IMG/VR virus record: IMGVR_UViG_3300036770_007547
Location: 62,001-126,000 of that record
Reading direction: 5' to 3' (one strand)
DNA: 64,000 bases
Both the position numbers and the translations under genes were made by a program. How positions within the stretch are numbered: position 1 is the stretch's first letter; each line of letters begins with the position of its first letter. The notes below the pieces were generated by a model. That model did no database searches. It was not told where the DNA came from and saw only the letters and a program-made list of their open reading frames with translations. Of this stretch, positions 5,742 through 23,024 are shown one piece after another.

Positions 5742-6520
5742 TATTTCCTCTCTATGTCATCTTCTTGGCAGTCATCGCCGTACTGTATTTCGACTATGCG
5801 CAATTCTTGGGCAGTCTCGTTGCAGAGGCGGTGCCATTGATTACGAGAGATATGTAGATGCTGGAACTCACTGTAATGCCCGAGATGCTCGATGTCTGTG
5901 CTCTTGTCATCAATGGTATAAACCGATGCTTCACCTTTGCTCACAAACCAGAATTCAGATCGGTTGCTGTGTCGCTGCATGCTGAGACATGTTCCGGGCT
6001 CGACTGTGAGTTCTTTGACCTTGACTTGTGGGCCATCTTCGTGCAGCACACGATAATAGCCCCAGGGCCGGTTTGTCTTGGGTGCTTTCCACTCTTCTAG
6101 TATCCAGCTCGAAGAGTTCTTTTTGTCCTCGCCGCCAACACCGAACTTGAAATCGATGTTTGGGTCCTGTATCGACATCTCGGGGATGTTGTCAGAGGTG
6201 CGATCCCCGCCATTGGCAAAGATGATGCGATTTTGTGGGTAACTGGCCCGCACCATCTCGATGGCCCGGCGTGCCGATCCATCGCTGTCATCGAAGTCGA
6301 TGACGAAATCCACGCCTGTGATGTGTTTGAGTATGTTGCCACGCTCTCTCAAGGGCATGAAAGCACGACCTTTCTTGCGTTCCAACCAAGCATCGCTGTT
6401 GACACCCACTACCAAGATATCGCCCATGGCTTTGGCTGCTTGGAGATAACTGATGTGACCGCTGTGTATGGGGTCAAATCCCCCGGTGACCAATACTACG
6501 ACTTTGTCTTTTTCGTACAT
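5741..6520 (-). CDS. Cytidylyltransferase-like (HxGH) domain fused to a type II mannose-6-phosphate isomerase-like cupin
   Basis: TGGFDPIHSGH, GVNSDAWLERKKG, FANGGDR; RPWGYYRVL...LSMQRHSNRSEFW. Start moved to ATG at 6520 (MYEKDKVV) to avoid overlap. Confidence 0.85.
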   Translation of the reverse strand: MYEKDKVVVLVTGGFDPIHSGHISYLQAAKAMGDILVVGVNSDAWLERKKGRAFMPLRERGNILKHITGVDFVIDFDDSDGSARRAIEMVRASYPQNRIIFANGGDRTSDNIPEMSIQDPNIDFKFGVGGEDKKNSSSWILEEWKAPKTNRPWGYYRVLHEDGPQVKVKELTVEPGTCLSMQRHSNRSEFWFVSKGEASVYTIDDKSTDIEHLGHYSEFQHLHISRNQWHRLCNETAQELRIVEIQYGDDCQEDDIERK

Positions 6521-8945: not shown

Positions 8946-9394
8946 ACCGATGCATCCTCCATGCCAGCAGTCCTCAATCTAACGATGTGACCACTCATCC
9001 ATTGCTTGCTGTCCAGACCCTTCATGATGCCCAACCACCGATTGCGTAGATAGGCCACTTCGTTGATGATGGTTTCAAAGTCAATGACTTCGTCTTCGCC
9101 GTCCACGTATTTCTCAGCATCACGAGCCGTGAGTGCCCGGGCATAGCCTTCCAGATATTTCTGGAAGTGTCGCCTGCGTATCTTCCTGAGCTGTATGTTG
9201 AGATAGTTGAGCACGGCTTCGATCTCTTGGAGTTGATTGAATCTGAACTCGGTGATGCCCGGGAGTTCTTTGATGTTGCGCTCCACCAACCCCCCGATTC
9301 GGCATTCTGCTTTGGCTGACTCAAGCTCGTTTTCATAGTGCGTGATGAAATCAGGGATGGCACCAAGATCGCTGGTGATTCGTCTAAGCCACAT
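8942..9394 (-). CDS. uvsY: Recombination mediator UvsY-like protein
   Basis: YLEGYARALTARDAEKYVDGE...KGLDSKQW...LRTAGMED; near uvsX. Start moved to MWLRR at 9394. Confidence 0.8.
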   Translation of the reverse strand: MWLRRITSDLGAIPDFITHYENELESAKAECRIGGLVERNIKELPGITEFRFNQLQEIEAVLNYLNIQLRKIRRRHFQKYLEGYARALTARDAEKYVDGEDEVIDFETIINEVAYLRNRWLGIMKGLDSKQWMSGHIVRLRTAGMEDASV

Positions 9395-10646
9395 TTTTTG
9401 CCTCGTCGAGATAGGTAGTAAATTGTTCGAGCCATGGAAAAAGTTCTCTCCAATTGGTGCCACGACGTCGGTCTTTCTCGTCGAGGTACACCAATAGATT
9501 CCGTATCTGTTCAGGCACCGGTCCGGTGCTCCGACTCTTTAGGTATATACCATGCATGTTGGCCCAGGCCAAACGATTTTCATCAGTGTCTTGTGGCATG
9601 AGTCCTAGTATTTCTTGCCAGCGATCTTCAAACACATCACCGCCCAAGATGTTGATCTTGAGATACTCGGGATTGGGGCTGGCATCTGAAAACCAGTGCC
9701 CGATGTGCCGTTGTTTCCGCCATTCTGCCAATCGTCGCAGCAACTCGGGCATAGAGGGCAGTGTGAGTGGGGTGATGGTCTGGCTGATGTGCAATTTCAA
9801 CCACGGTTGTTGGCACAGATATTCAAAATTTTCTTGCCATTGTTTGAGATCTATGCCCCATCGCACATATTCTTGTTCAGGCCCCCAACAGTCGATGCTG
9901 GCGCTGACATCGATACGGCGAAGACGCTCGTTCAGGATCAACTGCTTCCATTGTTCCACATAGGATTCCAATCGAGATCTGGGTATCATGAGATTGGTGA
10001 CCACATTGAGATCGCAGTCAGGATTGGGCTGTTGCCAGATACGATCCAGCAGCTCCTGGAACTCGCGCATCAACAACGGTTCCCCGCCCAAGACATGCAG
10101 CCTGCGCAGTTTGGGAAAGCCGGTTTCAAACCATTTCCAGAACGACGGTGCTAAATCCCGATACTGATTTTGATGCGGTTCCAGTCGTACTCCCAGTTTC
10201 TGGAACGCACCGTGTTTGATGTTTTCTTGATTGATGCTGCTGCTGAGCCTGGGACTGCAATACAAGCATGCGAGGTTACAGGTGTTGCTGAACAACACAT
10301 CTATCACTGTGGGGTCGACTTGGGTGGCAGTGGCATCAGCATCCAGCTCGGGTGGACTGATCCTAGGCATGTCTAGATGCCGCATGCGATCACTGACTCC
10401 ACCTTCTTGCTCGATGCCACGACAATATCCACAATTGGTGTCAGGCCAGTCACCACGTAACATGGCCTCACGATCGGTTATTTTCGATTCAGTGTTGTGG
10501 AATTGGTCAAAGTTTTCGGGAGTGATCGTTGACAACGAAGTACGCCAGCAACTGGCTGTGGTGCCCGAATTGAGGTACAGGGTGCTCCAGGCCCATTTGA
10601 GCTGGCAGGCTGTGGCAGTGCGTATCGGGAAAACACGATCTGGCAC
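9384..10646 (-). CDS. Radical SAM protein with an N-terminal Twitch/SPASM-like Cys cluster
   Basis: CNLACLYC (CxxxCxxC), GGEPLL, SIDCWG..EYVRWG; N-terminal C..KW...SC...CGYC. Confidence 0.85.
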   Translation of the reverse strand: MPDRVFPIRTATACQLKWAWSTLYLNSGTTASCWRTSLSTITPENFDQFHNTESKITDREAMLRGDWPDTNCGYCRGIEQEGGVSDRMRHLDMPRISPPELDADATATQVDPTVIDVLFSNTCNLACLYCSPRLSSSINQENIKHGAFQKLGVRLEPHQNQYRDLAPSFWKWFETGFPKLRRLHVLGGEPLLMREFQELLDRIWQQPNPDCDLNVVTNLMIPRSRLESYVEQWKQLILNERLRRIDVSASIDCWGPEQEYVRWGIDLKQWQENFEYLCQQPWLKLHISQTITPLTLPSMPELLRRLAEWRKQRHIGHWFSDASPNPEYLKINILGGDVFEDRWQEILGLMPQDTDENRLAWANMHGIYLKSRSTGPVPEQIRNLLVYLDEKDRRRGTNWRELFPWLEQFTTYLDEAKNVA

Positions 10647-10901: not shown

Positions 10902-11957
10902 TTATTGTTGTTCAGTTTCTTCTTCTTTGTTGGTGGTGGCCGGTTCCTGGAAATCGCGCATGACTTTGTCCAAACAGCCATCCTCGTTGGATTCCCATCC
11001 TTTGCGAAAGTATTTGATGATCTCACCATCTGAGGTCACAAACATCAGCTTGTTGCCATCCTTTTTCAACATGCCTTTCTTTTCAGCAAGATCCACCAAG
11101 CCTGAATAGGGATTCATGCCGGTCTCGTAAGGGATCTTGACCTGCACGCCTTCAAATGGTTTGGCATAGCGTGTTTTCATGACCTTACAAGCCGATCTGA
11201 TGCCCATGACATCGGAGATCTTGTTGCCATCTTCGTCCTCTTTGAGCTTGAGCTTGCGCATGGCTACCACGATGCTTGATGCATAGATAAAGCCCTGGCC
11301 GCCCGAGATCTTGTCATCGGGGTCGAACATGTCTTGGCTGGCATAGGTATGGTTGGTACAAACCATGCCTACTCCATATGCGCCAAACATATTTACACAA
11401 TTTCGCACCAAAGCTGTGAGGCTCTTGGCCTTGCGACCCAGATCACCCTTCATGTCACCGCTCTCAAATTGGTTCACGTCCGTGGGTGTCAGCAACATGC
11501 CCAAGCTGTCGATCACAAACAACACCTTGGGTCGATCTTCTGCGGCCAGGGACTTGTAGTCGCTCATGAACGTGGAGATGGTCTTGGCTACATCATCCAC
11601 CATGGCCATGCTGAGTTTGAGCAGCTTGCCTTCGTCGGTGCTCACTCCTAGAGCATGCAACCATGCTTCGTCGAGAGCATTTTCTGTGTCCACCAACACC
11701 ACGAAGATGCCCTGTTCCTGAGCATTCTTGATGATGTTTCCGCTGCAGATATAGCTCTTGCCTGCACCCGACTCGCCGGCGAACACAGTGACCTTGCCCA
11801 GTGGGATGCCACGATTGAAGTCACCCGAGATCAGGTAGTTGAGTGCGTAGTTGCCGGTGCTGATCCAGTCAGTGGGATCATTGAAGCCGATGCTGAGACC
11901 ATCAATACTTTTGGTGATCTCTTTGCGGAATTTGCTTACATCAAACGGTTTAGCCAT
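10902..11957 (-). CDS. uvsX: RecA-like recombinase UvsX
   Basis: Walker A GESGAGKS, DTENALD, VIDSLG, NHTY, SGGQGFIYASS. Confidence 0.95.
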   Translation of the reverse strand: MAKPFDVSKFRKEITKSIDGLSIGFNDPTDWISTGNYALNYLISGDFNRGIPLGKVTVFAGESGAGKSYICSGNIIKNAQEQGIFVVLVDTENALDEAWLHALGVSTDEGKLLKLSMAMVDDVAKTISTFMSDYKSLAAEDRPKVLFVIDSLGMLLTPTDVNQFESGDMKGDLGRKAKSLTALVRNCVNMFGAYGVGMVCTNHTYASQDMFDPDDKISGGQGFIYASSIVVAMRKLKLKEDEDGNKISDVMGIRSACKVMKTRYAKPFEGVQVKIPYETGMNPYSGLVDLAEKKGMLKKDGNKLMFVTSDGEIIKYFRKGWESNEDGCLDKVMRDFQEPATTNKEEETEQQ

Positions 11958-11999: not shown

Positions 12000-12028
12000 A
12001 GTATACTGCATTTATTCCCAGCTGTCAA
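12000..12028 (-). promoter_or_regulatory. Sigma70-type early/middle promoter for uvsX
   Basis: TTGACA-17 nt-TATACT on the minus strand. Confidence 0.85.
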
Positions 12029-13211
12029 TGCCCAACGGATATCTAGGTCGATAGCCAAAAACTTCACAGCATTCGCGCTGTATGTGATCGGGCAAGCTCG
12101 AAAATTCTTGTTCGTTGTCGCAATCTGGCCAACTGGCATCTCGGACGCGATAGTAAAATTCCCACCATTTTTTGCGCCTGAGATACAAGGGTACCAATCT
12201 TTTGGCCGGAGTCGATGTGTCCAATTCGCTGTGTACCTGTTGTATCACTTGCCAATCTCGTTGCATCCAATACTGCAATCTCTGATAGTTGTATTCCACA
12301 TCCTCCCGGACGCGATCGGCTATCACATGCATGTTCTCCAACAACCAAGCTGTGCATTGTACCACAGCATCCAGGCGCTGTTCTAGGTCAGGAATCATGT
12401 CATAGGTCTGTCGGGGCAGATATTCCTCGAAGGTGCGGAATCCGCGTCTTCGCAGATAATCCAGGATTCCGGGACTGCTACCTATCACCAAAAATGGTTG
12501 GCGATTGGCCATGGTCTGCCAGGTTTTCTCTGTCACGATGCCGCGTGTGGATTCATTGGTCTCGCACACGATCCTAAAGGATGTGTCTCGGTACAACCGC
12601 CAATCGAACCAATCACCGTCGCGATGCAGATTCAGCTCAGAATCAAGATCAGCAAAAGCACCATCGGGATCGCGCACATGATTGGCCACGAATTTCTTGT
12701 ATTCGCGATCTGTGAGTTCGGGAATAAACTCACGGGCCTGGGCCAGCTGATCCGGATAACCGGGCAAGCTCCATGTGGCACGATCCAACAACGATGCCTG
12801 TTGCAATTTCCACAACAGTCTCATGCGACTGGCATGGTTGGCTTTGCCCAACAACACCAAGAAACGTCCGGTATGGGCGTTCCAGCTGGGATTGAACTTG
12901 ACCATTCGCCATTCTTCGAGATGCAGGCGCAAAATGTGTAGATCAAAATCCACATAACGTACCTGTTTTCCCAGCAGATGCTTGAGCTCGGCATGGTAAT
13001 CAAACCCGTCCTGCAACAGCCAGATCGCTGAACGATCCGTGTCATACACTTTTACCATGTTCACGATCTCGACCAATGCATGTGGTGTCAGGTACTCGAG
13101 GCTCCAGAGAAGACCGCGACGATTTCTTGGTTTGAGCCGGTACCACTCTTGTATCTTCAACGGATGCGTGCCCAACAAGTGCATCTGATAGGGATAGTAT
13201 GCATCACTCAT
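12012..13211 (-). CDS. Hypothetical protein with a GT10 (fucosyltransferase)-like 'E...TEK' domain
   Basis: TSFRIVCET...IVTEKTWQTMANRQPFLVIG...GFRTF...YD; C-terminal W..FY..VRD.SWPDC module. Confidence 0.5.
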   Translation of the reverse strand: MSDAYYPYQMHLLGTHPLKIQEWYRLKPRNRRGLLWSLEYLTPHALVEIVNMVKVYDTDRSAIWLLQDGFDYHAELKHLLGKQVRYVDFDLHILRLHLEEWRMVKFNPSWNAHTGRFLVLLGKANHASRMRLLWKLQQASLLDRATWSLPGYPDQLAQAREFIPELTDREYKKFVANHVRDPDGAFADLDSELNLHRDGDWFDWRLYRDTSFRIVCETNESTRGIVTEKTWQTMANRQPFLVIGSSPGILDYLRRRGFRTFEEYLPRQTYDMIPDLEQRLDAVVQCTAWLLENMHVIADRVREDVEYNYQRLQYWMQRDWQVIQQVHSELDTSTPAKRLVPLYLRRKKWWEFYYRVRDASWPDCDNEQEFSSLPDHIQRECCEVFGYRPRYPLGIDSWE

Positions 13212-14181
13212 GGTACTGATACCTCAAAGTCATGTGATGTTCGAGGTCCCCGCTGTAAAACCAGTCATAGTTGTGTTCGATGTTGTCAAGCTCGATTTGA
13301 TAGAGATCTCTCCAGTCCGCGGAATCCAAGTTGGAAAATCTAGACAGCATGTCCAACAGCAAAACCAGGCGCTTGACTGGATTGGGCTCGAGATCGAAAC
13401 TGTAGTCAAAAACTCCGCGATAGAGCCGGAATCCCCAATAGCGTTCGAGATAATGATGCCAACCGGGTTGAGCATAGGCCACAAACAATCCACGAGTGGA
13501 GATGCTGTGGAGGAATTTTTCAGTGATGAATGGCTCGTGCGTGGTAGACATGCTCTCGCTGACCACATGCACGAAACTGGTGGTCAAGGCCGATTCCAAC
13601 ACTTGTGCATTGTGCTCATGGCGTCCGCGATCATAGTTCATGGAATTCTGGACTGAAAAAAACTCGGGACTGTTTTTCCCAATGAAAAATTTGCGCCAGT
13701 ATCGATCATCGCTGCCAGTGAAATCTTGTATGTGCCCGTCCACGATGGCAGAGTCAAATGCGAAATTTTTGGTCACTCTCAAGGCATCGTACCAGCCGCG
13801 TCGATGCAAGGCTGCGGTGAGCAACCGACGTCCCACGTGCGGACTACCATTGAAACTGCAAAGAAAAGCCTGGAACTTGTGATCTGGATGCACGCGATAA
13901 CTCAACATGCGTTGCCAGAGGTATTCACGTATGATGTTTACCGGATAAGAAAGGCTGATGTGTGGATAGTTGCACTGTATGTGCGGCAAGGGAAGATATG
14001 GTGTAGACACACAGAGCGTGCGTCCCCGGCGCTGTGCTTCGCCTTCGATGCGATCTAATATGAGATTTCTTCCTCGATGATCGATGCCATCGAGATGATC
14101 GCCCAGCAAAAAGACATCCGGCAGTTGGGCTAGATCTGCCGGAGTCTTGGTTTCATTCCAGGGAGGTTGTATGCAAAGCAT
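13204..14181 (-). CDS. Hypothetical protein with a GT10-like 'E...TEK' domain (paralog of 12012..13211)
   Basis: TSFVHVVSES...FITEKFLHSI...GF..Y..VFDYSFD. Confidence 0.5.
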   Translation of the reverse strand: MLCIQPPWNETKTPADLAQLPDVFLLGDHLDGIDHRGRNLILDRIEGEAQRRGRTLCVSTPYLPLPHIQCNYPHISLSYPVNIIREYLWQRMLSYRVHPDHKFQAFLCSFNGSPHVGRRLLTAALHRRGWYDALRVTKNFAFDSAIVDGHIQDFTGSDDRYWRKFFIGKNSPEFFSVQNSMNYDRGRHEHNAQVLESALTTSFVHVVSESMSTTHEPFITEKFLHSISTRGLFVAYAQPGWHHYLERYWGFRLYRGVFDYSFDLEPNPVKRLVLLLDMLSRFSNLDSADWRDLYQIELDNIEHNYDWFYSGDLEHHMTLRYQYHE

Positions 14182-15554
14182 CAGGCAAGTTTGGGAACAC
14201 TCCGACGATCTAGAATGATGCCCAGGGCCGGCAGTGCTATCATGATGGCACTAAACATCCAACGCTCCAATGGCAGCGCATTGAAGTGTCCAAGCACTCC
14301 CACGACTATGGCGGCCAACACACCCCAAAGCATGAATCGTACTTGTGCCTGATGACGACTGAACACTCCATACAACACCGGCGCGATGGTCAGCAATCGT
14401 GCTGTACCAAACGTGATAAAAATGATCCAGATGTCGATCTTGAACAGAGCGATCACCGTGGTCACTAGAGCGATAAACACCATGGCGATGCGGCTCACCT
14501 TCACAGCATCACGGTCCGGCATGAAGTCGTTGCTGATGATGCTACCAAAACTGTTGTAGGCTGTGTCAATGGTAGATGCCGAGGCTGCCAGGAATGCCAG
14601 GGTGATCAAGACCAGCCCCCATTGCCCGAGCAAGAACTCACTGACCATGGTACCAGCCAGCTTGGGATCTTTGACTTCGAGTCCAAGCGGAACTGCCGAG
14701 CCTGCCATGATGCCAAATCCGATCAGGATCACTAGATAGATGGGGATGCTCAACAAAAAAGCCCGACGTATCTTGGAAACATCATTGGCGGCAAAGATCC
14801 TTTGGTAAAATCCGTTGTCGTTGAGCGAACTGCCTACCAAGATAAAAATGGTCATGATGCCGATGTTGGTCACTGTGGCTGGGTCCCACAGACTCACATT
14901 GGTCTTGGTCTGCACTGCGTCCCACACTGTGCCAAACCCACCGGCTGCTGCCACGGCAGCACCGCCGAGCCCCACTGCGATCAACAGCATCACACCAGTC
15001 TGCAACATGTCGGTCCTGATACTGCTTTTGAGTCCGCCCCACAGCGAGTACAACAACACGATGGCGGCCACACCAATCACCACCGCTTCGTAGGTGATCG
15101 AACTCTTGCCCACGTAAGTGGCGATACCACCAAATGCTGTGAGATTGGCTACCACGGCATTGAGAACACCAAACAACATCACGGCCTGGAATATACGGGT
15201 GAGAGTGGTGCTGCCATAACGCTCTTGTATGAATCCACTCAGCGTGAACTGTCGATTGTTTTGAGCCAGGAGACTGCTTGACACAGCACTCATCATCAAC
15301 AACACTATCACCGTGGGCAAAATGAACCAGAAGAATCCAGCGAAACCTTTGGTAAACACAAAGGCGCTGACCATGACAAACGCGAACAAGTGTATCCAAG
15401 ATGCCACGATGCTGCTGCTGAGTTCGGTGACACCCACGTCGCGGTTGCTGAGTAAGTAGCCCACTTTGCTGTCTCGAAACTGGCTGCCGATGTTCCAGGA
15501 ACTCAACAGCATGAGTCCAGCAAACAAGGCCAGTGCTATCAGGAATGCATCCAT
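14181..15554 (-). CDS. Sodium:solute symporter (SSS, PutP/DUR3-like) family transporter
   Basis: About 13 hydrophobic segments; SIVASW, YSLWGGLKSSIRTDMLQ, YQRIFAA, AASASTID. Confidence 0.9.
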   Translation of the reverse strand: MDAFLIALALFAGLMLLSSWNIGSQFRDSKVGYLLSNRDVGVTELSSSIVASWIHLFAFVMVSAFVFTKGFAGFFWFILPTVIVLLMMSAVSSSLLAQNNRQFTLSGFIQERYGSTTLTRIFQAVMLFGVLNAVVANLTAFGGIATYVGKSSITYEAVVIGVAAIVLLYSLWGGLKSSIRTDMLQTGVMLLIAVGLGGAAVAAAGGFGTVWDAVQTKTNVSLWDPATVTNIGIMTIFILVGSSLNDNGFYQRIFAANDVSKIRRAFLLSIPIYLVILIGFGIMAGSAVPLGLEVKDPKLAGTMVSEFLLGQWGLVLITLAFLAASASTIDTAYNSFGSIISNDFMPDRDAVKVSRIAMVFIALVTTVIALFKIDIWIIFITFGTARLLTIAPVLYGVFSRHQAQVRFMLWGVLAAIVVGVLGHFNALPLERWMFSAIMIALPALGIILDRRSVPKLA

Positions 15555-15578
15555 TTGTAACTCCTATGTTATATCACT

Positions 15579-16556
15579 TCATTTAGCCGCGATGCGTGGC
15601 TTGGCCCGAAATTCATCCACAGTGGCCAGATAACTACCACACTCACAGCGACCTTTGTAGCTGTAAGAGATATAGTCACCGAGATCGTTGTTGAATATGG
15701 GCAACGTCCAGATATTGGTGAAAAACGAGCGACCATCACGATAAGTCATGTGCGTGAAATCTTCGTTGAAATGCTGGTGTCCGTGGCGGCAGGTCCACAT
15801 GATCTGCCCGATTTCACTGCTGCCATATATGTCATAGATATCGTCCACGCCAAACGCATCCATGAGTCGTTGTTTGTCGGTGATATGACCACCGGTGCTG
15901 ATGATGGCACGGGGTTGTCTTGTAAAGTATTTGCGTGGTTCCATGTCGGCCAATCGATGCAGTTTGCTGGGCGTGCTCATGAACACTGTGACACCGTGAT
16001 CGCGTATGCGCTCTAGTTTGCGTTTCAAACTGGAACTGCGCTCGATGATGACTCGGGCACCGATCACCAGTTGTGCTGCTTCCTCCATGACACGGAATCC
16101 GGCTTGCATGGTTCCCAGGGCCGTGGTCAAAAACACATCATCGTGATCCATGCCCAAGGCCAGCATACCACGTGCTGTGCAGGCCAGGGTTTTCCACCAA
16201 TCGTCTTGGCGATAAGGGAACAATTTGACCGGACCAGTGCTGCCGCTAGAGGTCACTAGATATTCACCAGACTCTAACACTCCGTATGGAGGATCCGACA
16301 ATTGATTGTTGAGCCAGCGATCGGTGGTGGTTTCGGGAACCACACCCAGGTGTTCTGGACTCGTGACCGTGTGATCTCCAAACCAGAAATCACGAGTCAC
16401 CGAGTCCAACTTGTCCAGCGTGTGCATCCAGTTTTGGTCGCGTCGTTGCAACACATGTTCTCGACTCACTAGATGCGCTTGTGAGTCCAACAAAAGTCTC
16501 TGTCGTACCAGCCTGGATAGATCAGAGTATGCGATGTTCGAGGCTGGTTCGATCAT
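15579..16556 (-). CDS. Phenylacetate-CoA ligase (PaaK/CapK)-like adenylate-forming enzyme, apparently lacking the C-terminal lid domain
   Basis: TSSGSTGP P-loop, STPS, YDIYGSSEIG, GRCECGS. Start set at MIEP (16556), which has a GGAGG SD. Confidence 0.75.
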   Translation of the reverse strand: MIEPASNIAYSDLSRLVRQRLLLDSQAHLVSREHVLQRRDQNWMHTLDKLDSVTRDFWFGDHTVTSPEHLGVVPETTTDRWLNNQLSDPPYGVLESGEYLVTSSGSTGPVKLFPYRQDDWWKTLACTARGMLALGMDHDDVFLTTALGTMQAGFRVMEEAAQLVIGARVIIERSSSLKRKLERIRDHGVTVFMSTPSKLHRLADMEPRKYFTRQPRAIISTGGHITDKQRLMDAFGVDDIYDIYGSSEIGQIMWTCRHGHQHFNEDFTHMTYRDGRSFFTNIWTLPIFNNDLGDYISYSYKGRCECGSYLATVDEFRAKPRIAAK

Positions 16557-17163
16557 CGATCCTCCGTCGGCCATTGTAGGTACCAGACTCTGAGAGGCTG
16601 TCATATATGGTAGATCCTGATAAGATATTGGTGTAATTGGGTATGATGGTCGTTCCAGTGCGATTCATGATGGAACTGCGCAAACCTATCACTGTGCCTT
16701 GACCGATGCGCGTGTTATTTAAGAAACAATAGGCGCTGACATGGCAAAAGTTTTCCAAAGTCACATAGTGACCAAACTGTATGAATGATGACAGTATCAC
16801 ATGATCCCCGATGTCGATCACTCCACACAATAGATCCACCCAGGAACTCACCAACGTACCACGACCAATTTTCACATCGGGATTGATGGTGTGACTGGTG
16901 TCATGTATGAGACTGAACCAATCCACTCCCTGCGAATCTAGATATTCCACTGCGCTGATCTTGAGAGCGATGTCGCTTCCAAGCATGATGTATTGATATT
17001 GGCTCAGCCAATCTTTGTTTTGTTGCTGTAGTTGTTCCACAGTGTATGAAACGCACGGCCTTGTGGTAGACAACAGTTTCATCATGTGTCTACTCAGCAA
17101 AGCCGTGCCAACAAAGCACAATGGCTTCCCGGTATCATATAGAACCGTGATACCGGGTGTCAT
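16522..17163 (-). CDS. PglD/NeuD-like hexapeptide-repeat (left-handed beta-helix) acyltransferase
   Basis: SLIHD..., VKIGRGTLV, IGDHVIL, GHYVTL, IGQGTVIG. Confidence 0.8.
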   Translation of the reverse strand: MTPGITVLYDTGKPLCFVGTALLSRHMMKLLSTTRPCVSYTVEQLQQQNKDWLSQYQYIMLGSDIALKISAVEYLDSQGVDWFSLIHDTSHTINPDVKIGRGTLVSSWVDLLCGVIDIGDHVILSSFIQFGHYVTLENFCHVSAYCFLNNTRIGQGTVIGLRSSIMNRTGTTIIPNYTNILSGSTIYDSLSESGTYNGRRRIDDRTSLEHRIL

Positions 17164-17164
17164 G

Positions 17165-18154
17165 TCAGCCTTTGTTTTGTCTTGCTCGGATCATGGCCAG
17201 GATGTCCTCGGCTTTGGCATTGGAGGCCTTGGCCGGTTCCGACACCACAGGTGCTGTGGCCACCGGTGTGTCTTCGTCCTCGTCAAACGAGCTAGACACT
17301 GGGGCTGCCTTGGCTGGTGCTTGATGCACATCACCATGTCCATCCACCGAGGGCTTGGACGACGGAGCCGACATTCCAGCCGGACGGAAATACTGTCCCC
17401 AGCGTTCCATGTCAAAGGGCTGGCCGTCCACCGAAGCTTCGAACATCTCTTTCATGACCTTGAGCTCTACATCAGTGGGCTTCTTGGGCAAGAACTCGTT
17501 GAGATCAAACAAGCCGTATTTCTCAAGGGCTGCTTGCTCGTCTTCGGTGAGAGCGCTTTCTTTGCGGGCCCACTTGGATGTGGAATAGTCTGCGTAACCA
17601 CCTTTTGATGTCTTGGTGATACGGAAATCCAGACCACGCAAGAGATCGGTGGGCAGTTCTTCCAACTCGGGATCCATCAGTGCGGATTTGATTGTTTGGA
17701 AGATCTGGGGACCGATGATGAATCTGCGGATGGGATTTTCCGGAGTCTTGTCATCGCTGAGCGGATTTTCGCGAACAAAGCCCTGGAAAATGTAGCTACG
17801 CTTCTTCCAGTATTTGCGACCCATGTCTTCGAGGCTCTTGTCTTTGAACCAAGTGCGCACTTCGGCCAGGATCGGGCAGCTTTCGCCCCACATTTCCACA
17901 CAAGGTACTTGTACTTGTACCTGCTTGGAGTCCATTTCGCTTTTGACGCCGTTGAACGGCAGCTTGATCATGGCTCGCTCGACCCAGAAAAATGTGTTCT
18001 TTGAGTTGCCATCGGGCAGGAACCGAACCACTGCGCTTGCGCCTTCGTCGATGTTCCAATGGGGATAGATTGCATTGTCGCCGCCGGTGCTTTGACCGCC
18101 TTTGCCTGACTCTGCGGCTGCGAGTCGTGCGCGGATTTCTGCTAGAGATGCCAT
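17165..18154 (-). CDS. gp32: T4 gp32-like single-stranded DNA-binding protein
   Basis: MASLAEIRARL, VRFLPDGN, CVEMWGESCPI, YWKKRSY, GYADYSTSKW, acidic tail. Start at 18154 with AAGGA SD. Confidence 0.92.
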   Translation of the reverse strand: MASLAEIRARLAAAESGKGGQSTGGDNAIYPHWNIDEGASAVVRFLPDGNSKNTFFWVERAMIKLPFNGVKSEMDSKQVQVQVPCVEMWGESCPILAEVRTWFKDKSLEDMGRKYWKKRSYIFQGFVRENPLSDDKTPENPIRRFIIGPQIFQTIKSALMDPELEELPTDLLRGLDFRITKTSKGGYADYSTSKWARKESALTEDEQAALEKYGLFDLNEFLPKKPTDVELKVMKEMFEASVDGQPFDMERWGQYFRPAGMSAPSSKPSVDGHGDVHQAPAKAAPVSSSFDEDEDTPVATAPVVSEPAKASNAKAEDILAMIRARQNKG

Positions 18155-18170
18155 AATAGAAGTTTCCTTT

Positions 18171-18214
18171 CGTTTGCCTAAGTTTAGCCTAGTATGTGCC
18201 TTCAAACGCATACT
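18171..18214 (-). promoter_or_regulatory. Candidate pseudoknot in the gene 32 leader (translational operator)
   Basis: mRNA AGUAUG pairs with CAUACU and, interleaved, CGUUUG pairs with CAAACG just before the SD. Confidence 0.5.
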
Positions 18215-18220
18215 GCACTG

Positions 18221-18250
18221 AGTATAGCGTGCTTTTATTTAGTCCGTCAA
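18221..18250 (-). promoter_or_regulatory. Sigma70-type promoter for gene 32 with an embedded late core TAAATA (18236-18241)
   Basis: TTGACG-18 nt-TATACT; TAAATA lies inside the spacer. Confidence 0.75.
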
Positions 18251-18263
18251 GCACTTTCGTTGA

Positions 18264-18290
18264 AATTTGGGCGACCTGGCCGCCCAAATT
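18264..18290 (-). terminator. Stem-loop after the MFS gene (probable terminator)
   Basis: Perfect 10-bp inverted repeat aatttgggcg/cgcccaaatt with a 7-nt loop; weak U tract. Confidence 0.6.
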
Positions 18291-18297
18291 CCCGGTA

Positions 18298-19557
18298 TCA
18301 TGTGCTAGACACAGTGTTTGATCGCGGTATCAAAAAGAAAGTGGACACAAATGCTATGATGCTCAACACCGTGAACACCCAGCCCAACACCGTGATGTCA
18401 TTGTTGTAGCTGGACAATATTTCGGTGTTCATGAGTGGCACCAGCCCTCCGCCCACCATGCCGCCCAGATTCATGCTGACACCGCTGGCAAACTGGCGTA
18501 TGCGAGTGGGATAGATTTCTGTGAGCAGAGCCGAAGCCGGTGCCCAGGACCCACCACCGATCAGTATGGCTCCCAGCAAAAATGGGCCCAGTACCCAGCC
18601 CTCGGCTACCCAACCAAAGATTGGTACACTGAGGAAAATCCCGGCCAGGGTCACGATCTGATACACACGTAGACTGCCCAAGGGGCTGGGACCCAAGCGA
18701 TCGGCCAACCAACCAGCAAACAGCACAAACGCCAGATACACGAAAGTTAGATAAAACCATGTGTCCATGATGGCAGCACGGCTGGCGCCCAGATGTTGTA
18801 CCATCCAGGCCACAGAAAAGAAGATGATGCCGTGATAAAACGCTGCGCCCAATTGATAGACACCAATGGCCACCAGCACTCGTTTCCAATGCTGTGCCAA
18901 CAGTTCGCGCATGCCCGGACCTTCTTCTTTCTGTGCCTGCTGGAAAGCCGGAGTTTCCAGCACCTTGAGCCTAGCATACACACCTATGGCCAAGAGAACC
19001 ACGCTGAAAAGGAACGGGATACGCCATCCACCATCCAGCAAAAAGTTGTCACCGAAACTGGTGAGTGCGGCAAACACCGCGGTGCCCATGATAGTGGCCA
19101 AGGGCAGCCCCGAGGCCAACAATCCGCTGAACAGCCCGCGCCGTTGGCTGTCGAGATTGTATTCGATCATGATGGTGCTGGTGGCAGCCCATTCGCCGCC
19201 CAGTGCCATGGTCTGTATGATCCGCAACACAAACAATCCAACCGCAGCCCACACACCGATCTGTTCAAACGTGGGCATCAGTCCCACCAATGTAGTGGTG
19301 ATACCGGTCATGATCAAGGTCAGCACCAGAGTGGGTTTTCTACCCAGTCGATCACCTAGGTAGCCAAACACTGCGCTGCCCACGGGCCTCGCAAAAAATC
19401 CCACCCCATACACCAATGCAGCGATCCAAAATCCCAGGTCAGGGAAAAATAGATTTTTGAACACCAATGCAGTGGCGATACCAAATATAACAAAATCATA
19501 CCATACTATGGTTGCGCCCAAGACGCAACTCAGCATGGCGTGTTTCCTAACATCCAT
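18298..19557 (-). CDS. MFS transporter, metabolite:H+ symporter (MHS, ShiA/ProP-like) family
   Basis: WYDF..FG, FFARPVG..VFGYLGDRLGRK, LRIIQ..ALGGEW, WRIPFL, EIYPTRIR. Confidence 0.92.
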   Translation of the reverse strand: MDVRKHAMLSCVLGATIVWYDFVIFGIATALVFKNLFFPDLGFWIAALVYGVGFFARPVGSAVFGYLGDRLGRKPTLVLTLIMTGITTTLVGLMPTFEQIGVWAAVGLFVLRIIQTMALGGEWAATSTIMIEYNLDSQRRGLFSGLLASGLPLATIMGTAVFAALTSFGDNFLLDGGWRIPFLFSVVLLAIGVYARLKVLETPAFQQAQKEEGPGMRELLAQHWKRVLVAIGVYQLGAAFYHGIIFFSVAWMVQHLGASRAAIMDTWFYLTFVYLAFVLFAGWLADRLGPSPLGSLRVYQIVTLAGIFLSVPIFGWVAEGWVLGPFLLGAILIGGGSWAPASALLTEIYPTRIRQFASGVSMNLGGMVGGGLVPLMNTEILSSYNNDITVLGWVFTVLSIIAFVSTFFLIPRSNTVSST

Positions 19558-19566
19558 GAGCTTCTC

Positions 19567-20163
19567 CTAGATTTGTGTTGCTCCGGGCACTGCCCGATTT
19601 CCATAATAAGTGCCGGGACTGACCACATCTTTGTGAACCAGGCTGCCCATCATGAATTTGACATCATCGGTCACGTTCACGTAACTCGATATCGTGGACG
19701 AATAGCCCACGAATACATTATGGCCGATGCTGCTGCGGCCTCCCACGGTGACATTGGGACTGAAATACACGTTCCTACCAGTGTGTGTCTCATGCGTGAT
19801 GCTGGAATGCGTGCTGATCACATTGAACTCGCCCAAACGCACACGGAAACACACATAGACTTGACCATAGATCCAAGTACCGCGCTGTAAATTTTCCGGC
19901 TCTTCCACCCAGGCTGCTGGATGGACATAAATGGGCCAGTTCACCCGATCGATGTCATTGGATTCCAAGAACCGTTTTCGTCGATCAATGTTTCCGAACG
20001 CCAACACACAACTTCCGCCCTGGGGCACACGATGCAGTTCGTCATATTCGATGTGATGTACTGCGGTGACTGTGGATTCACGCTCTAATAGGAAACTGTA
20101 TTCTTGTGCCAGTATTCCCGAGCCTACCACCCAAAACTCGCCCAATTCATGTTGATACAACAT
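19567..20163 (-). CDS. PglD/NeuD-like hexapeptide-repeat acyltransferase
   Basis: N-terminal VVGSGILA, YVHPAAWV, ITHET, IGHNVFVG, PGTYYGN. Confidence 0.82.
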   Translation of the reverse strand: MLYQHELGEFWVVGSGILAQEYSFLLERESTVTAVHHIEYDELHRVPQGGSCVLAFGNIDRRKRFLESNDIDRVNWPIYVHPAAWVEEPENLQRGTWIYGQVYVCFRVRLGEFNVISTHSSITHETHTGRNVYFSPNVTVGGRSSIGHNVFVGYSSTISSYVNVTDDVKFMMGSLVHKDVVSPGTYYGNRAVPGATQI

Positions 20164-21568
20164 ATTTTTTCAAAACATCAAAAGATCTAGATTTTTTGTT
20201 GGTATCGGTGATTGGGATGTCGACCACCGAGTATATAGAATCAATGCCGCTGACTTGACTTATGTTGGATACATCGCCTAGAACAAAGGCTGCTAGACCT
20301 TGGTCCACTCGTATCACCACGCTGTCGGTGACTCCGGGCTGCTGATTGATGCGATTTTCCAACTCCAGGCAACTGATCCATCGTCCCTGGTGTTCCATCA
20401 ACTGCTCGCGGCGGCCAGCATAGTAATAATATCCATCGCTGTCCATCCACATGTAGTCACCGGTACGGTATCCCCCATCAACGAAACTGCGTTGTGTGCG
20501 CACAGCATCTCCGACATAGCCCACAGCGATGTTGCTGTGATACACCACTAGCTCACCAATCTCATCAACATCGCAGACACTGCCATCGTCGCGTGTCAAC
20601 AAGCACTTCGCCCCGGGTCCCATGCGTCCCAGACTGCCGCGGCGAAAATCGCCGGGACTGTTGCTGAGCACTGCCCAGGTGCGTATCTCTCCGGCGCCAT
20701 AAGTGTTCAAAACGTCCCGGCCAAATTTTTCCCGGAACGCCGATTCAGTCATGGGCAACAGGGCTTCGCCGGTGCTGTACACTGCCTGTAGCCCGGGATG
20801 GAAATCTCCGATCTTGTGTCTCACCAAGAAGTCAATGATCTTTGGGCTCACCATGGCATTGGTCACGCCCTGTTCATCGATGATGTCGTGTATGCGACGG
20901 AAATCTCTGGGAGTGTCAAGCACTATCAAAGTGTATCCCAGACTAAGGTGTCCCAGTATCGAAATGATCATACCAAACGAACTGGCCAGTTTGACTGATG
21001 TCATGACTCGGCTGGTGTGATCCAGAGCCAATGGATTGGGCTTGGAAAATGTTTGTTCAAGTCCGTGATGTCGATGCGCTATCAACTTGGGATCCGAAGT
21101 GGTGCCCGAACTGGTGATCACTGCCCAAACATCCTGTTCGGTGTAATCGTAGACCAGGTCAATGTCAAGTTCCGTTTGGTCATTGATGTCGTCCATGAGC
21201 ACTGTTGGTAGTCCCGGCGGTATCTCTAGATCATCGAGCATGTTTTTCTGGGTGATTATCCAGCGGCTGGCAGCACGCTGGCTGATGCTGACCACATAGT
21301 CGCGTCCAGCATTGGGCATGACCACCACTGGCACAGCACCGATCACTGTCAGGGCATGGAAAACCTCCAACCATTTGACACCGTCATCAGCGATGAATGT
21401 CACAGCATCGCGGCAGCGTATGCCACGATTCCAGAGATAGTGCGCTGTGCTGAGACAGGACGATTTAAATTGCGCCCAATCACGGACTTGACCATCATAC
21501 ACGATGGCATCATGCTTGGGTCCGGCAGCCCAACGAGTCAGACTGTTGTAGACGATGTTGTTTTTCAT
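20147..21568 (-). CDS. AMP-binding acyl-CoA synthetase, benzoate-CoA ligase-like
   Basis: TSSGTTSDPK, STGEAL...FG.DVLNTYGAGE...LSN.PG..R.GSLG, YRTGD, YAGR, terminal T.TNKK. Confidence 0.85.
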   Translation of the reverse strand: MKNNIVYNSLTRWAAGPKHDAIVYDGQVRDWAQFKSSCLSTAHYLWNRGIRCRDAVTFIADDGVKWLEVFHALTVIGAVPVVVMPNAGRDYVVSISQRAASRWIITQKNMLDDLEIPPGLPTVLMDDINDQTELDIDLVYDYTEQDVWAVITSSGTTSDPKLIAHRHHGLEQTFSKPNPLALDHTSRVMTSVKLASSFGMIISILGHLSLGYTLIVLDTPRDFRRIHDIIDEQGVTNAMVSPKIIDFLVRHKIGDFHPGLQAVYSTGEALLPMTESAFREKFGRDVLNTYGAGEIRTWAVLSNSPGDFRRGSLGRMGPGAKCLLTRDDGSVCDVDEIGELVVYHSNIAVGYVGDAVRTQRSFVDGGYRTGDYMWMDSDGYYYYAGRREQLMEHQGRWISCLELENRINQQPGVTDSVVIRVDQGLAAFVLGDVSNISQVSGIDSIYSVVDIPITDTNKKSRSFDVLKKYVVST

Positions 21569-21618
21569 GTGATTGTGTGGATACTTGAGATGTCTGAGCC
21601 GACATCTTGTTGGTGTCT

Positions 21619-21624
21619 TATTTA
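21619..21624 (-). promoter_or_regulatory. Late promoter core TAAATA upstream of the ligase-acyltransferase-MFS cassette
   Basis: tattta on the plus strand in the 21569-21644 intergenic gap; a 7-bp hairpin (agatgtc/gacatct) follows in the leader. Confidence 0.6.
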
Positions 21625-23018: not shown

Positions 23019-23024
23019 TATTTA
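23019..23024 (-). promoter_or_regulatory. Late promoter core TAAATA, 6 nt before the ATG
   Basis: CATAAATA-ACACAT-ATG; no SD. Confidence 0.7.

Follow-up and report, generated by a model that had tools for sequence, protein, structure and literature searches.

The 64,000-nucleotide stretch of DNA that we analyzed (hereafter the window) is part of a 222,775-bp IMG/VR contig of an uncultured freshwater phage with a large genome. On its minus strand lie, in transcription order, an adenylate-forming (ANL/AMP-binding) ligase (ligase 1, 20147-21568), a left-handed β-helix (LbH, hexapeptide-repeat) acyltransferase (LbH1, 19567-20163), an MFS transporter (18298-19557), the single-stranded-DNA-binding protein gp32 (17165-18211), a second LbH acyltransferase (LbH2, 16522-17163), a protein with a PaaK/F390-like AMP-binding domain (15579-16493), an SSS symporter (14181-15554), and two glycosyltransferase-like genes, GT325 (13204-14181) and GT399 (12012-13211). 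This is the arrangement described in the original prediction, and the observation holds for all six cassette genes. The two triads of transporter, acid-activating enzyme and acyltransferase are also not duplicates of each other, as had been stated: LbH1 and LbH2 share 20% identity, the ligases belong to different ANL subfamilies, and MFS and SSS transporters have unrelated folds.

Ligase 1 (473 residues) is a full-length ANL enzyme (PF00501, E 1.4e-41) that appears intact, since the core motifs, including the C-terminal TNKK lysine motif, are invariant in its 10-member family. Its best matches in the PDB were anthranilate-, benzoate- and medium-chain-CoA ligases and NRPS adenylation domains, all at about 25% identity. 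In profile searches it scored equally with fatty-acyl, amino-acid-adenylating and aryl-CoA ligase models, all far below their cut-offs, and the best models included fatty-acid-, benzoate- and acetate-CoA ligases. The substrate can therefore not be read from homology, and the aromatic acid suggested in the original prediction is unsupported. The family was found only in phage-like contigs and in no bacterial genome.

LbH1 (198 residues) overlaps ligase 1 by 17 nt, and likewise in relatives. Its best profile is the NeuD/PglB/VioB family (TIGR03570, E 6e-29). An AF2 model (pLDDT 92.7) superposes over its full length, including the N-terminal nucleotide-binding subdomain, on NDP-amino-sugar N-acetyltransferases of the PglD type. 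These accounted for all of the top 16 Foldseek hits (TM 0.79 over about 204 columns), the named acceptors being 4-amino sugars. A histidine at position 124, which probably corresponds to the catalytic base of PglD, is conserved in 23 of 25 phage homologues. LbH2 (213 residues) is more divergent (TIGR03570, E 5e-15); VioB is its best, though weak, PDB match, and the histidine is conserved.

The MFS transporter (419 residues, about 12 TM segments by hydropathy) is of the metabolite:H+ symporter type (TIGR00883, E 3e-79; shikimate transporter model, E 3e-53). The SSS symporter (457 residues, about 12-13 TM segments) matches PF00474 (E 4e-18, 66 bits, above the cut-off), with weak hits to PanF and PutP models. 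It should be noted that all family scores are below the curated cut-offs, except those of the Pfam AMP-binding, MFS_1, Sugar_tr, Hexapep and SSF models, and that the activities of these proteins are inferred by similarity alone.

The PaaK-like protein lies in an ORF spanning 15579-16604, but the real gene encodes about 304 residues (15579-16493), with an uncertain start codon (TTG at 16493 or ATG at 16427). It matches PF00501 (E 2.5e-12), but consists of the N-terminal domain only, so that its description as a PaaK-like ligase needs correction. The PaaK-like ligase 6siw (436 residues) aligns over its residues 68-262, the PaaK equivalog score is 31.7 against a cut-off of 700, homologues are 302-304 residues long (282-304 as called), and all six family members, at 23-69% identity, stop at the hinge just after the CxCGS motif. 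The protein thus lacks the lysine that ANL enzymes normally need for adenylation. It is therefore possible, though doubtful, that cassette 2 is not a true parallel of cassette 1: the protein would then not be an acyl-CoA ligase, but might bind or adenylate by a non-canonical route, hand an acyl-adenylate directly to LbH2, or act on the cargo of the transporter in another way. This would be compatible with our main reading of cassette 1. Against it, the phosphate-binding loop SSGSTGxxK and the GSSE motif are invariant, the gene is under purifying selection (dN/dS 0.11), it matches a roughly 331-residue NCBIfam model, "DVU_1553 family AMP-dependent CoA ligase", at E 5e-9, and it keeps the same neighbors (LbH plus SSS, or LbH alone in the relative locus L050) as a full-length ligase does in other islands.

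The gene for gp32 (phrog_1192, E 3e-67; 65-89% identical in relatives) is a backbone gene that is not part of the proposed pathway but marks the insertion hot spot. Two TAAATA late-promoter-like cores are located where the original prediction placed them, one at 21619-21624, 51 nt upstream of the ligase 1 start codon, and one at 18236-18241, upstream of gp32. The latter lies within a σ70-like promoter (TTGACG-18-TATACT, 18221-18250, minus strand), preceded by a GC-rich hairpin at about 18266-18300; these are consensus matches only. TAAATA occurs 18 times in the window against 10.5 expected, and 13 of the 18 copies lie just upstream of genes, including structural genes, so that cassette 1 shares this motif with them. 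The full T4 octamer TATAAATA occurs only once.

GT325 (325 residues) is a core gene of this phage group and a probable GT-B-fold glycosyltransferase. We confirmed 237 relatives of it in IMG/VR, and in the 80 loci that we retrieved, the gene lies between gp32 and UvsX wherever those genes are in the locus. It had no Pfam or PDB sequence hit and no sequence-level link to any glycosyltransferase family. Its AF2 model (pLDDT 93) gave PDB fold matches that were weak (best E 7e-3, TM 0.35-0.41) but mostly to GT-B glycosyltransferases, and BFVD matches that included a protein fused to a UDP-glucose dehydrogenase domain and a fucosyltransferase-domain protein. GT399 (399 residues) is a distant paralogue present in some relatives only, with an hhalign probability against the GT325 profile of 93.5% as a single sequence and 97.6% as a family. 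The proposed assignment of the two genes as GT10-like thus has no sequence-profile support and rests only on a weak resemblance of fold and motif. The original prediction missed a nucleotidyltransferase-cupin protein (5741-6520, minus strand, 259 residues; PF01467/PF01050), which resembles sugar-phosphate nucleotidylyltransferases (RfaE domain II, E 2e-21; C-terminal part of GMP_PMI, E 5e-20) and is conserved in 11 distinct relatives (16 loci). Next to it lies a conserved backbone gene for a 549-residue protein (4092-5741, minus strand) with a weak GT8 match (PF01501, E 1.6e-3, below the cut-off) and homologues in most relatives.

To verify that the triads are units, we examined their synteny in related phages, a criterion that had been set beforehand and that they passed. 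Cassette 1 occurs in at least seven other distinct phage contigs (loci L002, L003, L004, L005/L006, L007, L008 and L010), in two gene orders (ligase-LbH-MFS and MFS-ligase-LbH) and at two sites, before and after gp32. Cassette 2 occurs in at least five (L014, L015, L016, L021-L023 and L027/L028). The arrangement is thus more than chance, and each triad behaves as one functional unit that stays together through changes of gene order, insertion site and recombination. All cassette genes are under purifying selection, with dN/dS values in close pairs of 0.05-0.14 (MFS 0.054, SSS 0.066, LbH2 0.137), similar to gp32 (0.14).

These findings contradict the view that the cassettes are inert passengers of recently acquired bacterial origin. 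Transporter genes in GenBank "phage" records are indeed mostly bacterial contamination or prophage cargo, but besides the purifying selection and the finding of the ligase 1 family in phage-like contigs only, the cassettes have the same G+C as the rest of the window, their start and stop codons are tightly coupled, and they recur across lakes and samples. We consider this explanation very improbable.

In 51 distinct gp32-GT325 islands of this phage group the parts are nested. A ligase is present in 9 islands, all of which have an LbH (hypergeometric P about 2e-5), and an uptake component in 6, all among those 9 (P about 5e-6), although these P values ignore shared ancestry. A further 9 islands have an LbH without a ligase. 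The same slot is filled by three unrelated uptake components, namely MFS, SSS and, in the relative locus L038, a signal-peptide-bearing TctC-like carboxylate-binding protein. The LbH usually abuts GT325, directly so in 12 loci. The cassettes thus appear as accessory modules in a hypervariable island around gp32, in a large group of uncultured phages that are mostly aquatic, to judge from those sample names that could be recognized; different relatives carry no module, the acyltransferase alone, ligase plus acyltransferase, or the full triad. However, GT325 is present with or without cassettes, so that adjacency may partly reflect a shared insertion hot spot, and cassette 2 recombines independently of the GT325 allele (about 95% against 66% identity in L021 versus L027).

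The nestedness also bears on the possibility that transporters and ligases are auxiliary metabolic genes, which would scavenge organic acids and commit them to the host CoA pool to fuel energy or lipid metabolism during infection, with the neighboring acyltransferases and glycosyltransferase-like genes being functionally unrelated. MHS and SSS carriers and acyl-CoA ligases are classic first steps of organic-acid catabolism, and the best models for ligase 1 would fit such a role. Yet no ligase occurs without an LbH in the 9 distinct islands, no uptake component occurs without both, ligase 1 and LbH1 overlap, an even more distant phage-like contig pairs an LbH with a relative of ligase 1, and no downstream catabolic genes are present. 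We therefore regard this reading as highly unlikely.

Taken together, the best explanation in our view, to which we assign a probability of about 0.5, is that each cassette is a three-step supply line for an unusual acyl group. In this view, a phage-encoded secondary transporter inserted in the host inner membrane would import a carboxylic acid, which may be aliphatic, hydroxylated, aromatic or an amino acid; cassette 1 would use the MHS-type MFS transporter and cassette 2 the SSS symporter. An adenylate-forming enzyme would activate the acid, most likely to the acyl-CoA, and a trimeric PglD/VioB-type N-acyltransferase would move the acyl group onto the amino group of a nucleotide-linked amino sugar. 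The acylated sugar would then be used by the GT-B-like transferases of the phage (GT325, GT399 and possibly the GT8-like protein) to decorate a target not yet identified, be it a virion protein, the phage DNA or the host envelope. Such a pathway would be new for phages, although built from known kinds of enzymes. The analysis itself establishes the gene identities at the level of family or fold, the conserved synteny, the nestedness, the purifying selection and the promoter-like motifs, whereas the enzymatic activities, the direction of transport, the formation of a CoA thioester, the amino-sugar acceptor, the coupling to GT325 and the target are inferred. The interpretation given in the original prediction, that imported and activated acids acylate sugars used by the phage's own glycosyltransferases, is thus supported only in part.

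The sugar context is further indicated by a DegT fragment and an SDR in the islands of relatives. However, no 4,6-dehydratase or sugar aminotransferase, and thus no gene for amino-sugar synthesis, was found in the 64-kb window or in 9 kb further along the contig, so that the acceptor would have to come from the host or from the remaining part of the genome, about 150 kb. It is conceivable, if unlikely, that the same three-step chemistry serves an acceptor other than a nucleotide sugar, such as an aminated DNA base or its nucleotide precursor, a polyamine, an amino acid or a xenobiotic; the cassettes would then serve DNA hypermodification or small-molecule production rather than glycan decoration. 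In favor of this, the cassettes flank gp32 and lie near UvsX, helicase and primase genes, the window encodes a dNMP kinase, as phages with modified nucleotides often do, the island is hypervariable between close relatives, as expected for arms-race loci, and the LbH superfamily includes non-sugar acyltransferases, with both phage LbH proteins scoring below the TIGR03570 cut-off. In contrast, the full-length fold matches of LbH1 are exclusively to NDP-amino-sugar N-acetyltransferases, the LbH usually abuts a GT-B-like gene, and no hydroxymethylase, aminotransferase or other base-modifying enzyme was seen in the 73 kb examined.

Among known systems, phage DNA glycosylation, as by the T4 α- and β-glucosyltransferases and by metagenomic methyltransferase/5mYOX/GT clusters (10.1101/2023.12.21.572611), shares with our locus GT-B-type transferases encoded by phages among DNA-metabolism genes, two paralogous transferases in some genomes, and hypervariability. 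However, no hydroxymethylase, cytosine methyltransferase or TET-like gene was seen in the 73 kb examined, T4 glucosyltransferase structures were not among the top 50 fold matches listed for GT325, and the cited study mentions no acyltransferase, nucleotide-sugar tailoring or transporter. Compared with the benzoate-, anthranilate- and phenylacetate-CoA ligases and NRPS adenylation domains of the ANL superfamily, ligase 1 has the full motif set and both domains, but is at most 28% identical to any named ligase, whereas the cassette 2 protein has only the PaaK-type N-terminal domain.

Giant viruses also encode amino-sugar N-acetyltransferases together with glycosyltransferases, as in the Mimivirus R141/L136/L142 genes for N-acetylviosamine on fibrils (PMC10117803, PMC9614988), where L142 even fuses an amino-sugar N-acetyltransferase domain to a glycosyltransferase domain (PMC10117803), echoing the adjacency of LbH and GT325. 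These are viruses of eukaryotes that use acetyl groups only, encode the dehydratase and aminotransferase themselves, and have neither a transporter nor an acid-activating ligase.

The closest relatives of LbH1 in structure are the bacterial NDP-4-amino-4,6-dideoxyhexose N-acetyltransferases PglD, the PglB acetyltransferase domain, VioB, PerB and WeeI, with which it shares the two-domain architecture (TM 0.75-0.80 over the whole length), though at 15-22% identity. These enzymes sit in O-antigen or protein-glycosylation clusters together with a dehydratase and an aminotransferase, neither of which was found here, whereas LbH1 is encoded by a lytic-type phage and is genetically welded to an adenylate-forming enzyme and a transporter, which implies a donor other than acetyl-CoA. 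Unusual acyl-CoA donors are used by other amino-sugar N-acyltransferases with a left-handed β-helix, such as AntD of the anthrose pathway and 3-hydroxybutanoyl-transferring FdhC-type enzymes, which put a non-acetyl acyl group on an NDP-amino sugar, the chemistry we propose here. Those pathways draw the acyl-CoA from host metabolism, whereas in the phage a dedicated putative ligase and importer are encoded next to the transferase.

The window belongs to the 222,775-bp IMG/VR contig IMGVR_UViG_3300036770_007547, where window coordinate x corresponds to contig x + 62,003. Its large terminase is 54% identical to that of the Pseudomonas jumbo phage PA5oct and about 52-54% identical to those of Sinorhizobium phage Phosso and Agrobacterium phage Atu_ph07, but no close relative exists among deposited phage genomes. 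DNA and tblastn searches of GenBank phages found no relative with the cassettes; the matches to the ligase and the MFS transporter were to bacterial contigs filed as phage or to prophage cargo, and the 325-residue protein discussed below as GT325 had no match at all.

The genes of interest all lie on the minus strand. In transcription order, a TAAATA motif (21619-21624) is followed by an ANL ligase (ligase 1, 20147-21568), a left-handed beta-helix, hexapeptide-repeat acyltransferase (LbH1, 19567-20163), which overlaps the ligase by 17 nt, and an MHS-type MFS transporter (18298-19557). After a hairpin and a promoter-like site come gp32 (17165-18211), a second acyltransferase (LbH2, 16522-17163), a PaaK-like protein (15579-16493) and an SSS symporter (14181-15554), and then a 325-aa gene (GT325), a 399-aa gene (GT399) and UvsX (10902-11957). 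The observation in the original prediction, two triads of ligase, acyltransferase and transporter on either side of gp32, is thus confirmed, and the two triads are not duplicates of each other. Its interpretation, import and activation of possibly aromatic acids for acylation of sugars used by the phage's own glycosyltransferases, is only partly supported.

The region between the MFS gene and gp32 (18221-18300, minus strand) contains a GC-rich hairpin without a T tract, followed by TTGACG-18-TATACT with an embedded TAAATA; judging from these motifs, gp32 may have both an early-type and a late-type promoter. The full T4-type late promoter octamer, TATAAATA, occurs only once in the 64 kb. In contrast, its TAAATA core occurs 18 times against 10.5 expected (e.g. 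at 23019, 25271, 38485, 41980, 45246, 54736, 54786 and 61224), and 13 of the 18 copies lie just upstream of genes, mostly structural ones but including ligase 1 and gp32, which makes it a candidate late-promoter core for this phage group on sequence grounds. Pfam hits among the ORFs of the structural part (25920-63876) include a dNMP kinase, a TnsA-like endonuclease, an Rv2179c-like 3'-5' exoribonuclease, an Mtd_N tropism-determinant domain, a Chlorovirus glycoprotein repeat and a CBM_5_12 module.

Conserved synteny in relatives had been set beforehand as the test of whether the triads are units, and we found it for both. Ligase 1 belongs to a small family of about ten cluster representatives at 36-58% identity, beyond which similarity drops to at most 28% with named CoA ligases. 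A scan of IMG/VR with the single ligase 1 sequence returned only the contig of the window, so that an alignment-based scan was needed to recover the family; an alignment-based pattern scan of 185,579 bacterial and archaeal genomes found no member, only a 25% Erythrobacter hit. Every contig that carries a member also carries the MFS and/or the LbH1 homologue next to it, as far as the contig reaches. Among the loci fetched from these contigs (numbered with the prefix L), L002 has the gene order of the window, whereas L003, L004, L005, L008 and L010 have the order MFS-ligase-LbH. The triad lies either between the virion gene and gp32 (window, L002, L004, L005, L008) or between gp32 and GT325 (L003; L007 and L010 show the GT325 side). 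The PaaK-like protein has two close homologues, both in the order LbH2-PaaK-like-SSS, which in L014 lies between gp32 and GT325 exactly as in the window; more divergent copies are found in L021-L023 and L027/L028. Both triads therefore survive changes of gene order, insertion site and genomic background. A word-indexed search with LbH1 found only one relative, and we therefore rebuilt the membership of this family from the fetched loci.

GT325 proved to be the key to the wider picture. It has 764 cluster representatives at E <= 1e-3 in a library of 1.8 billion proteins, and 237 relatives were confirmed in IMG/VR, of which 80 loci were fetched. Mapping the proteins of the window onto these loci shows a conserved backbone of TerL, virion protein, gp32, a variable island, GT325, a second variable island (sometimes with GT399), UvsX, an 81-aa protein, sometimes a radical SAM enzyme, a 198-aa protein and a methyltransferase. 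In the window, the radical SAM gene (9384-10646, minus strand) lies between the 81-aa and the 198-aa gene and encodes a twitch-domain protein (NF033640, 232 bits, above the cut-off) that is present in only some relatives. In one relative, L074, the large terminase is split into two ORFs (256-2320), which could result from a frameshift, an assembly error or an intervening element. We also considered whether a small ORF might encode a carrier protein for an NRPS-like route, but the conserved 81-aa protein has no PP-binding hit and an acidic tail, and we rejected the idea.

Among 51 distinct gp32-GT325 islands, 33 have no LbH (9 distinct islands, 13 loci, are essentially empty), 9 have an LbH without a ligase, and 9 have a ligase, all of which also have an LbH; 6 have an uptake component, and all 6 are among the 9 with a ligase. 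Simple hypergeometric probabilities for the two nested relations are about 2e-5 and 5e-6, but these ignore shared ancestry and are only indicative. The nestedness contradicts the view that the transporters and ligases merely scavenge nutrients, which we consider very unlikely. The uptake component is the MFS, the SSS or, in L038 (5080-5976) and also in L039, a TctC-like tripartite-tricarboxylate-transporter binding protein with a signal peptide, directly upstream of an ANL ligase and an LbH acyltransferase. Three unrelated solutions to bringing in a carboxylate, in the same genomic slot, argue strongly that import is part of the function.

In 12 loci the LbH directly abuts GT325. The islands with an LbH but no ligase pair it with an Asp/Asn-hydroxylase-type dioxygenase, or with a 205-233-aa protein of unknown function (together with a TauD-type dioxygenase in one island), or have it alone. 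The Fe/2-oxoglutarate dioxygenases beside the LbH gene in such islands (L024 4146-4664; L031, L034, L036, L063, L073; L090 1692-2753) are of the Asp/Asn beta-hydroxylase/LpxO type (PF05118) or the TauD type and might hydroxylate the acyl group or its precursor. The 205-233-aa family (L008 10476-11177; L040 2523-3140; L090 3374-4009) has no Pfam hits and repeatedly follows the LbH gene and precedes GT325; its copy in L008 has an HxD...H pattern that suggests a metal-dependent enzyme. Pfam searches with 18 representatives of other island gene clusters mostly gave no hit, and hhalign comparisons among clusters linked only GT399 to GT325 and the two ligase families to each other. A still more distant relative of ligase 1 (28% identity) also sits next to an LbH gene, on the contig of P0011 (ENA ERZ1426845), where both lie next to a 4HFCP_synth (MfnB-like) gene. 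This contig also encodes ribosomal protein S21, HSP70, HSP20, ClpS and an Rv2179c-like exonuclease, and thus looks like a huge phage.

To evaluate whether the genes are maintained, we compared close pairs of loci (L003 with L010, L021 with L027). dN/dS was 0.05-0.14 for every cassette gene, with the transporters being the most constrained, compared to 0.14 for gp32. Selection and recurrence contradict the possibility that the cassettes are inert cargo, which we regard as highly improbable. The cassettes of L021 and L027 are about 95% identical, while the adjacent GT325 genes are only 66% identical, a mosaic that indicates recent exchange; the cassette therefore moves as a block and is not tied to one GT325 allele.

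Ligase 1 is a member of the ANL adenylate-forming superfamily (PF00501, 143 bits against a cut-off of 29.9). It has every core motif, from the phosphate-binding loop and the YGxxE and TGD motifs of the N-terminal AMP-binding domain to the hinge GRxxxx motif and the catalytic lysine motif of the C-terminal domain, and SSGTT..PKL, YG.GE, TGD, GRxEQL and P.T.TNKK.R are invariant or nearly so in the 10 family members. Nothing, however, points specifically to aromatic acids. The fatty-acid-CoA ligase, amino-acid adenylation and benzoate-CoA ligase (TIGR02262) models score 154, 144 and 115 bits, all far below their cut-offs (375 for TIGR02262), and the relatives in PDB are about 25% identical. An amino acid or a hydroxy acid is as likely a substrate as an aryl acid.

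The protein described in the original prediction as a PaaK-like ligase is an N-terminal domain only. PaaK is a two-domain enzyme of about 430-440 residues, whose C-terminal domain carries the hinge and the catalytic lysine. In contrast, the phage protein has about 304 residues, aligns to the PaaK-like ligase 6siw over residues 68-262 of its 436, and scores 31.7 on the PaaK equivalog model against a cut-off of 700. All six homologues, at 23-69% identity, end just after the CxCGS motif, where the hinge to the C-terminal domain would begin. The N-terminal domain itself is of the PaaK type, with invariant SSGSTGxxK (P-loop) and GSSE motifs and with PaaK-like ligases and AjiA1 as best matches in PDB. 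It is under purifying selection. It lacks the C-terminal lysine that ANL enzymes normally need for adenylation. Due to this single-domain enzyme, cassette 2 may work by a non-canonical route; we consider this a tentative reading, which is compatible with the main model.

The best profile by far for both acyltransferases is TIGR03570, but their scores (101 bits for LbH1 and 55.7 bits for LbH2) are below its cut-off of 160.8. The AlphaFold2 model of LbH1 is confident (pLDDT 92.7) and has the two-domain fold of PglD/NeuD/VioB-type enzymes, with an N-terminal alpha/beta nucleotide-binding subdomain and a C-terminal left-handed beta-helix. In Foldseek searches, its 16 best matches in PDB were all NDP-amino-sugar N-acetyltransferases of the PglD type (PglB acetyltransferase domain, VioB, PglD, PerB, Pcryo_0637), with WeeI following at ranks 19-21. 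The TM-score is 0.79 over about 204 columns to 4m98 and 7txp and reaches 0.80 across the full two-domain length. A histidine (H124 of LbH1) is kept in 23 of 25 phage homologues and lies at or next to the VioB histidine in the HMMER alignments; its equivalence to the catalytic base of PglD is presumed. LbH2 is more divergent, but TIGR03570 and, weakly, VioB in PDB are again its best matches.

The MFS protein scores above the cut-offs of PF07690 and PF00083 and has about 12 hydrophobic segments; its best model is the metabolite:H+ symporter family TIGR00883, at 267 bits against a cut-off of 443. The SSS protein belongs to the sodium:solute symporter family (PF00474, 66.1 bits against 22.8) and has about 12-13 hydrophobic segments, with the PanF and PutP subfamily models far below their cut-offs. 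Scavenging of sialic acid, by NanT- or SiaT-like carriers together with NeuD, is not supported, since the MFS protein scores only 96 bits on the sialate model and no CMP-sialate synthetase was found.

The proposed similarity of GT325 and GT399 to GT10 fucosyltransferases is not supported by sequence profiles. The GT325 protein of the window has no Pfam hit, and none of the 42 family members has one to a glycosyltransferase family. No glycosyltransferase in PDB was matched with either the single sequence or the family profile, the latter giving only spurious cullin-type hits. The structure model of GT325 is confident (pLDDT 93), but its matches in PDB are weak (best E 7e-3, TM 0.35-0.41), although most are GT-B enzymes, with H. 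pylori alpha-1,3-fucosyltransferase at rank 10. In BFVD it matches uncharacterised freshwater phage proteins, a fucosyltransferase-domain protein (E 1.6e-3) and GT group 1 proteins (about 1e-2). One BFVD match, A0A6J5TB28, is a 788-aa protein of an uncultured phage that combines a GT325-like fold with an N-terminal domain of the UDP-glucose/GDP-mannose dehydrogenase type, which links the family to nucleotide-sugar metabolism. By eye only, the family motifs (..CSFNG....R and SET....TEK) recall those of GT10. GT399 is a distant paralogue of GT325.

The original prediction also missed a 259-aa gene at 5741-6520 (minus strand), which encodes an N-terminal cytidylyl/adenylyltransferase domain, like RfaE domain II, fused to a C-terminal cupin of the mannose-6-phosphate isomerase type. 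It is conserved next to a GT8-like gene in 11 distinct relatives (16 loci) and adds a putative nucleotide-sugar-forming step to the neighborhood. No sugar 4,6-dehydratase or DegT aminotransferase is encoded in the window or in the 9 kb beyond its low end, although the island of one relative has a DegT fragment and that of another an SDR. Extending along the contig, where a DNA-pattern scan returned 5 kb, we found helicase and primase genes in the flank, but no sugar or base-modification genes. The acceptor must therefore come from the host or from the unseen part of the genome, about 150 kb. As to the target of glycosylation, the late-type TAAATA motifs shared with structural genes and the position next to a virion gene fit virion decoration, whereas the position among gp32, UvsX, helicase and primase genes, the dNMP kinase in the window and the hypervariability fit DNA modification. 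The same chemistry on a non-sugar acceptor, including DNA precursors, remains a rival reading, but an unlikely one.

We estimate a probability of about 0.5 for the full chain, in which a carboxylic acid is imported, activated by the ligase (probably to acyl-CoA), transferred by the LbH enzyme onto the amino group of an NDP-amino sugar, and this sugar used by the GT-like enzymes of the phage. That each triad is one functional pathway is likely, whereas a nucleotide sugar as the acceptor is only slightly more probable than not. The interpretation is coherent and the comparative evidence good: synteny, nestedness and purifying selection were observed directly, whereas every biochemical step, including the acyl-CoA-dependent N-acylation of an NDP-4-amino sugar, is still inferred.

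A bolder reading, which is possible but doubtful on present evidence, is that a widespread group of uncultured aquatic phages runs a plug-in system for chemical diversification. Interchangeable modules would import environmental carboxylic acids (by MFS, SSS or TctC-type importers), activate them (by a full-length or single-domain adenylating enzyme, sometimes with dioxygenases) and write them as N-acyl groups onto a phage-made glycan, so that the chemistry of the virion surface or of the DNA would depend on the module carried and on the acids the water offers. This would be a new kind of arms-race or camouflage locus and the first case of a phage encoding transporters to feed its own biosynthetic pathway.

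If the supply chain is confirmed, lytic phages would be shown to remodel host membrane transport in order to feed a virus-specific biosynthetic pathway, there would be a natural toolbox of ligase and N-acyltransferase pairs for making N-acylated amino sugars, and a hypervariable locus, likely to matter for phage-host or phage-defence interactions in lakes, would be identified. It would also flag the conserved single-domain PaaK-like enzyme and the large uncharacterised GT-B-like family as worth biochemical study.

As far as our literature searches reach, there is no description of a phage that encodes importers and an activating ligase dedicated to its own acyl-transfer step, of a clade-wide, nested, modular set of such parts at one hot spot, or of a conserved single-domain PaaK homologue in that role; these searches found no single-domain PaaK homologues at all. 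The enzyme kinds themselves, PglD/VioB-type N-acyltransferases, ANL ligases, and MHS and SSS carriers, are known. Phage DNA glycosylation is a classic counter-defence, and virus-encoded glycan synthesis is known from giant viruses and from a few phages; in every described case the building blocks come from host metabolism, whereas here a phage appears to bring the whole supply chain for an unusual acyl group, including membrane importers, with a clade of relatives swapping these parts at one hot spot. Virus-encoded amino-sugar acetylation coupled to glycosyltransferases is known from Mimivirus, where L142 fuses the two activities (PMC10117803, PMC9614988).
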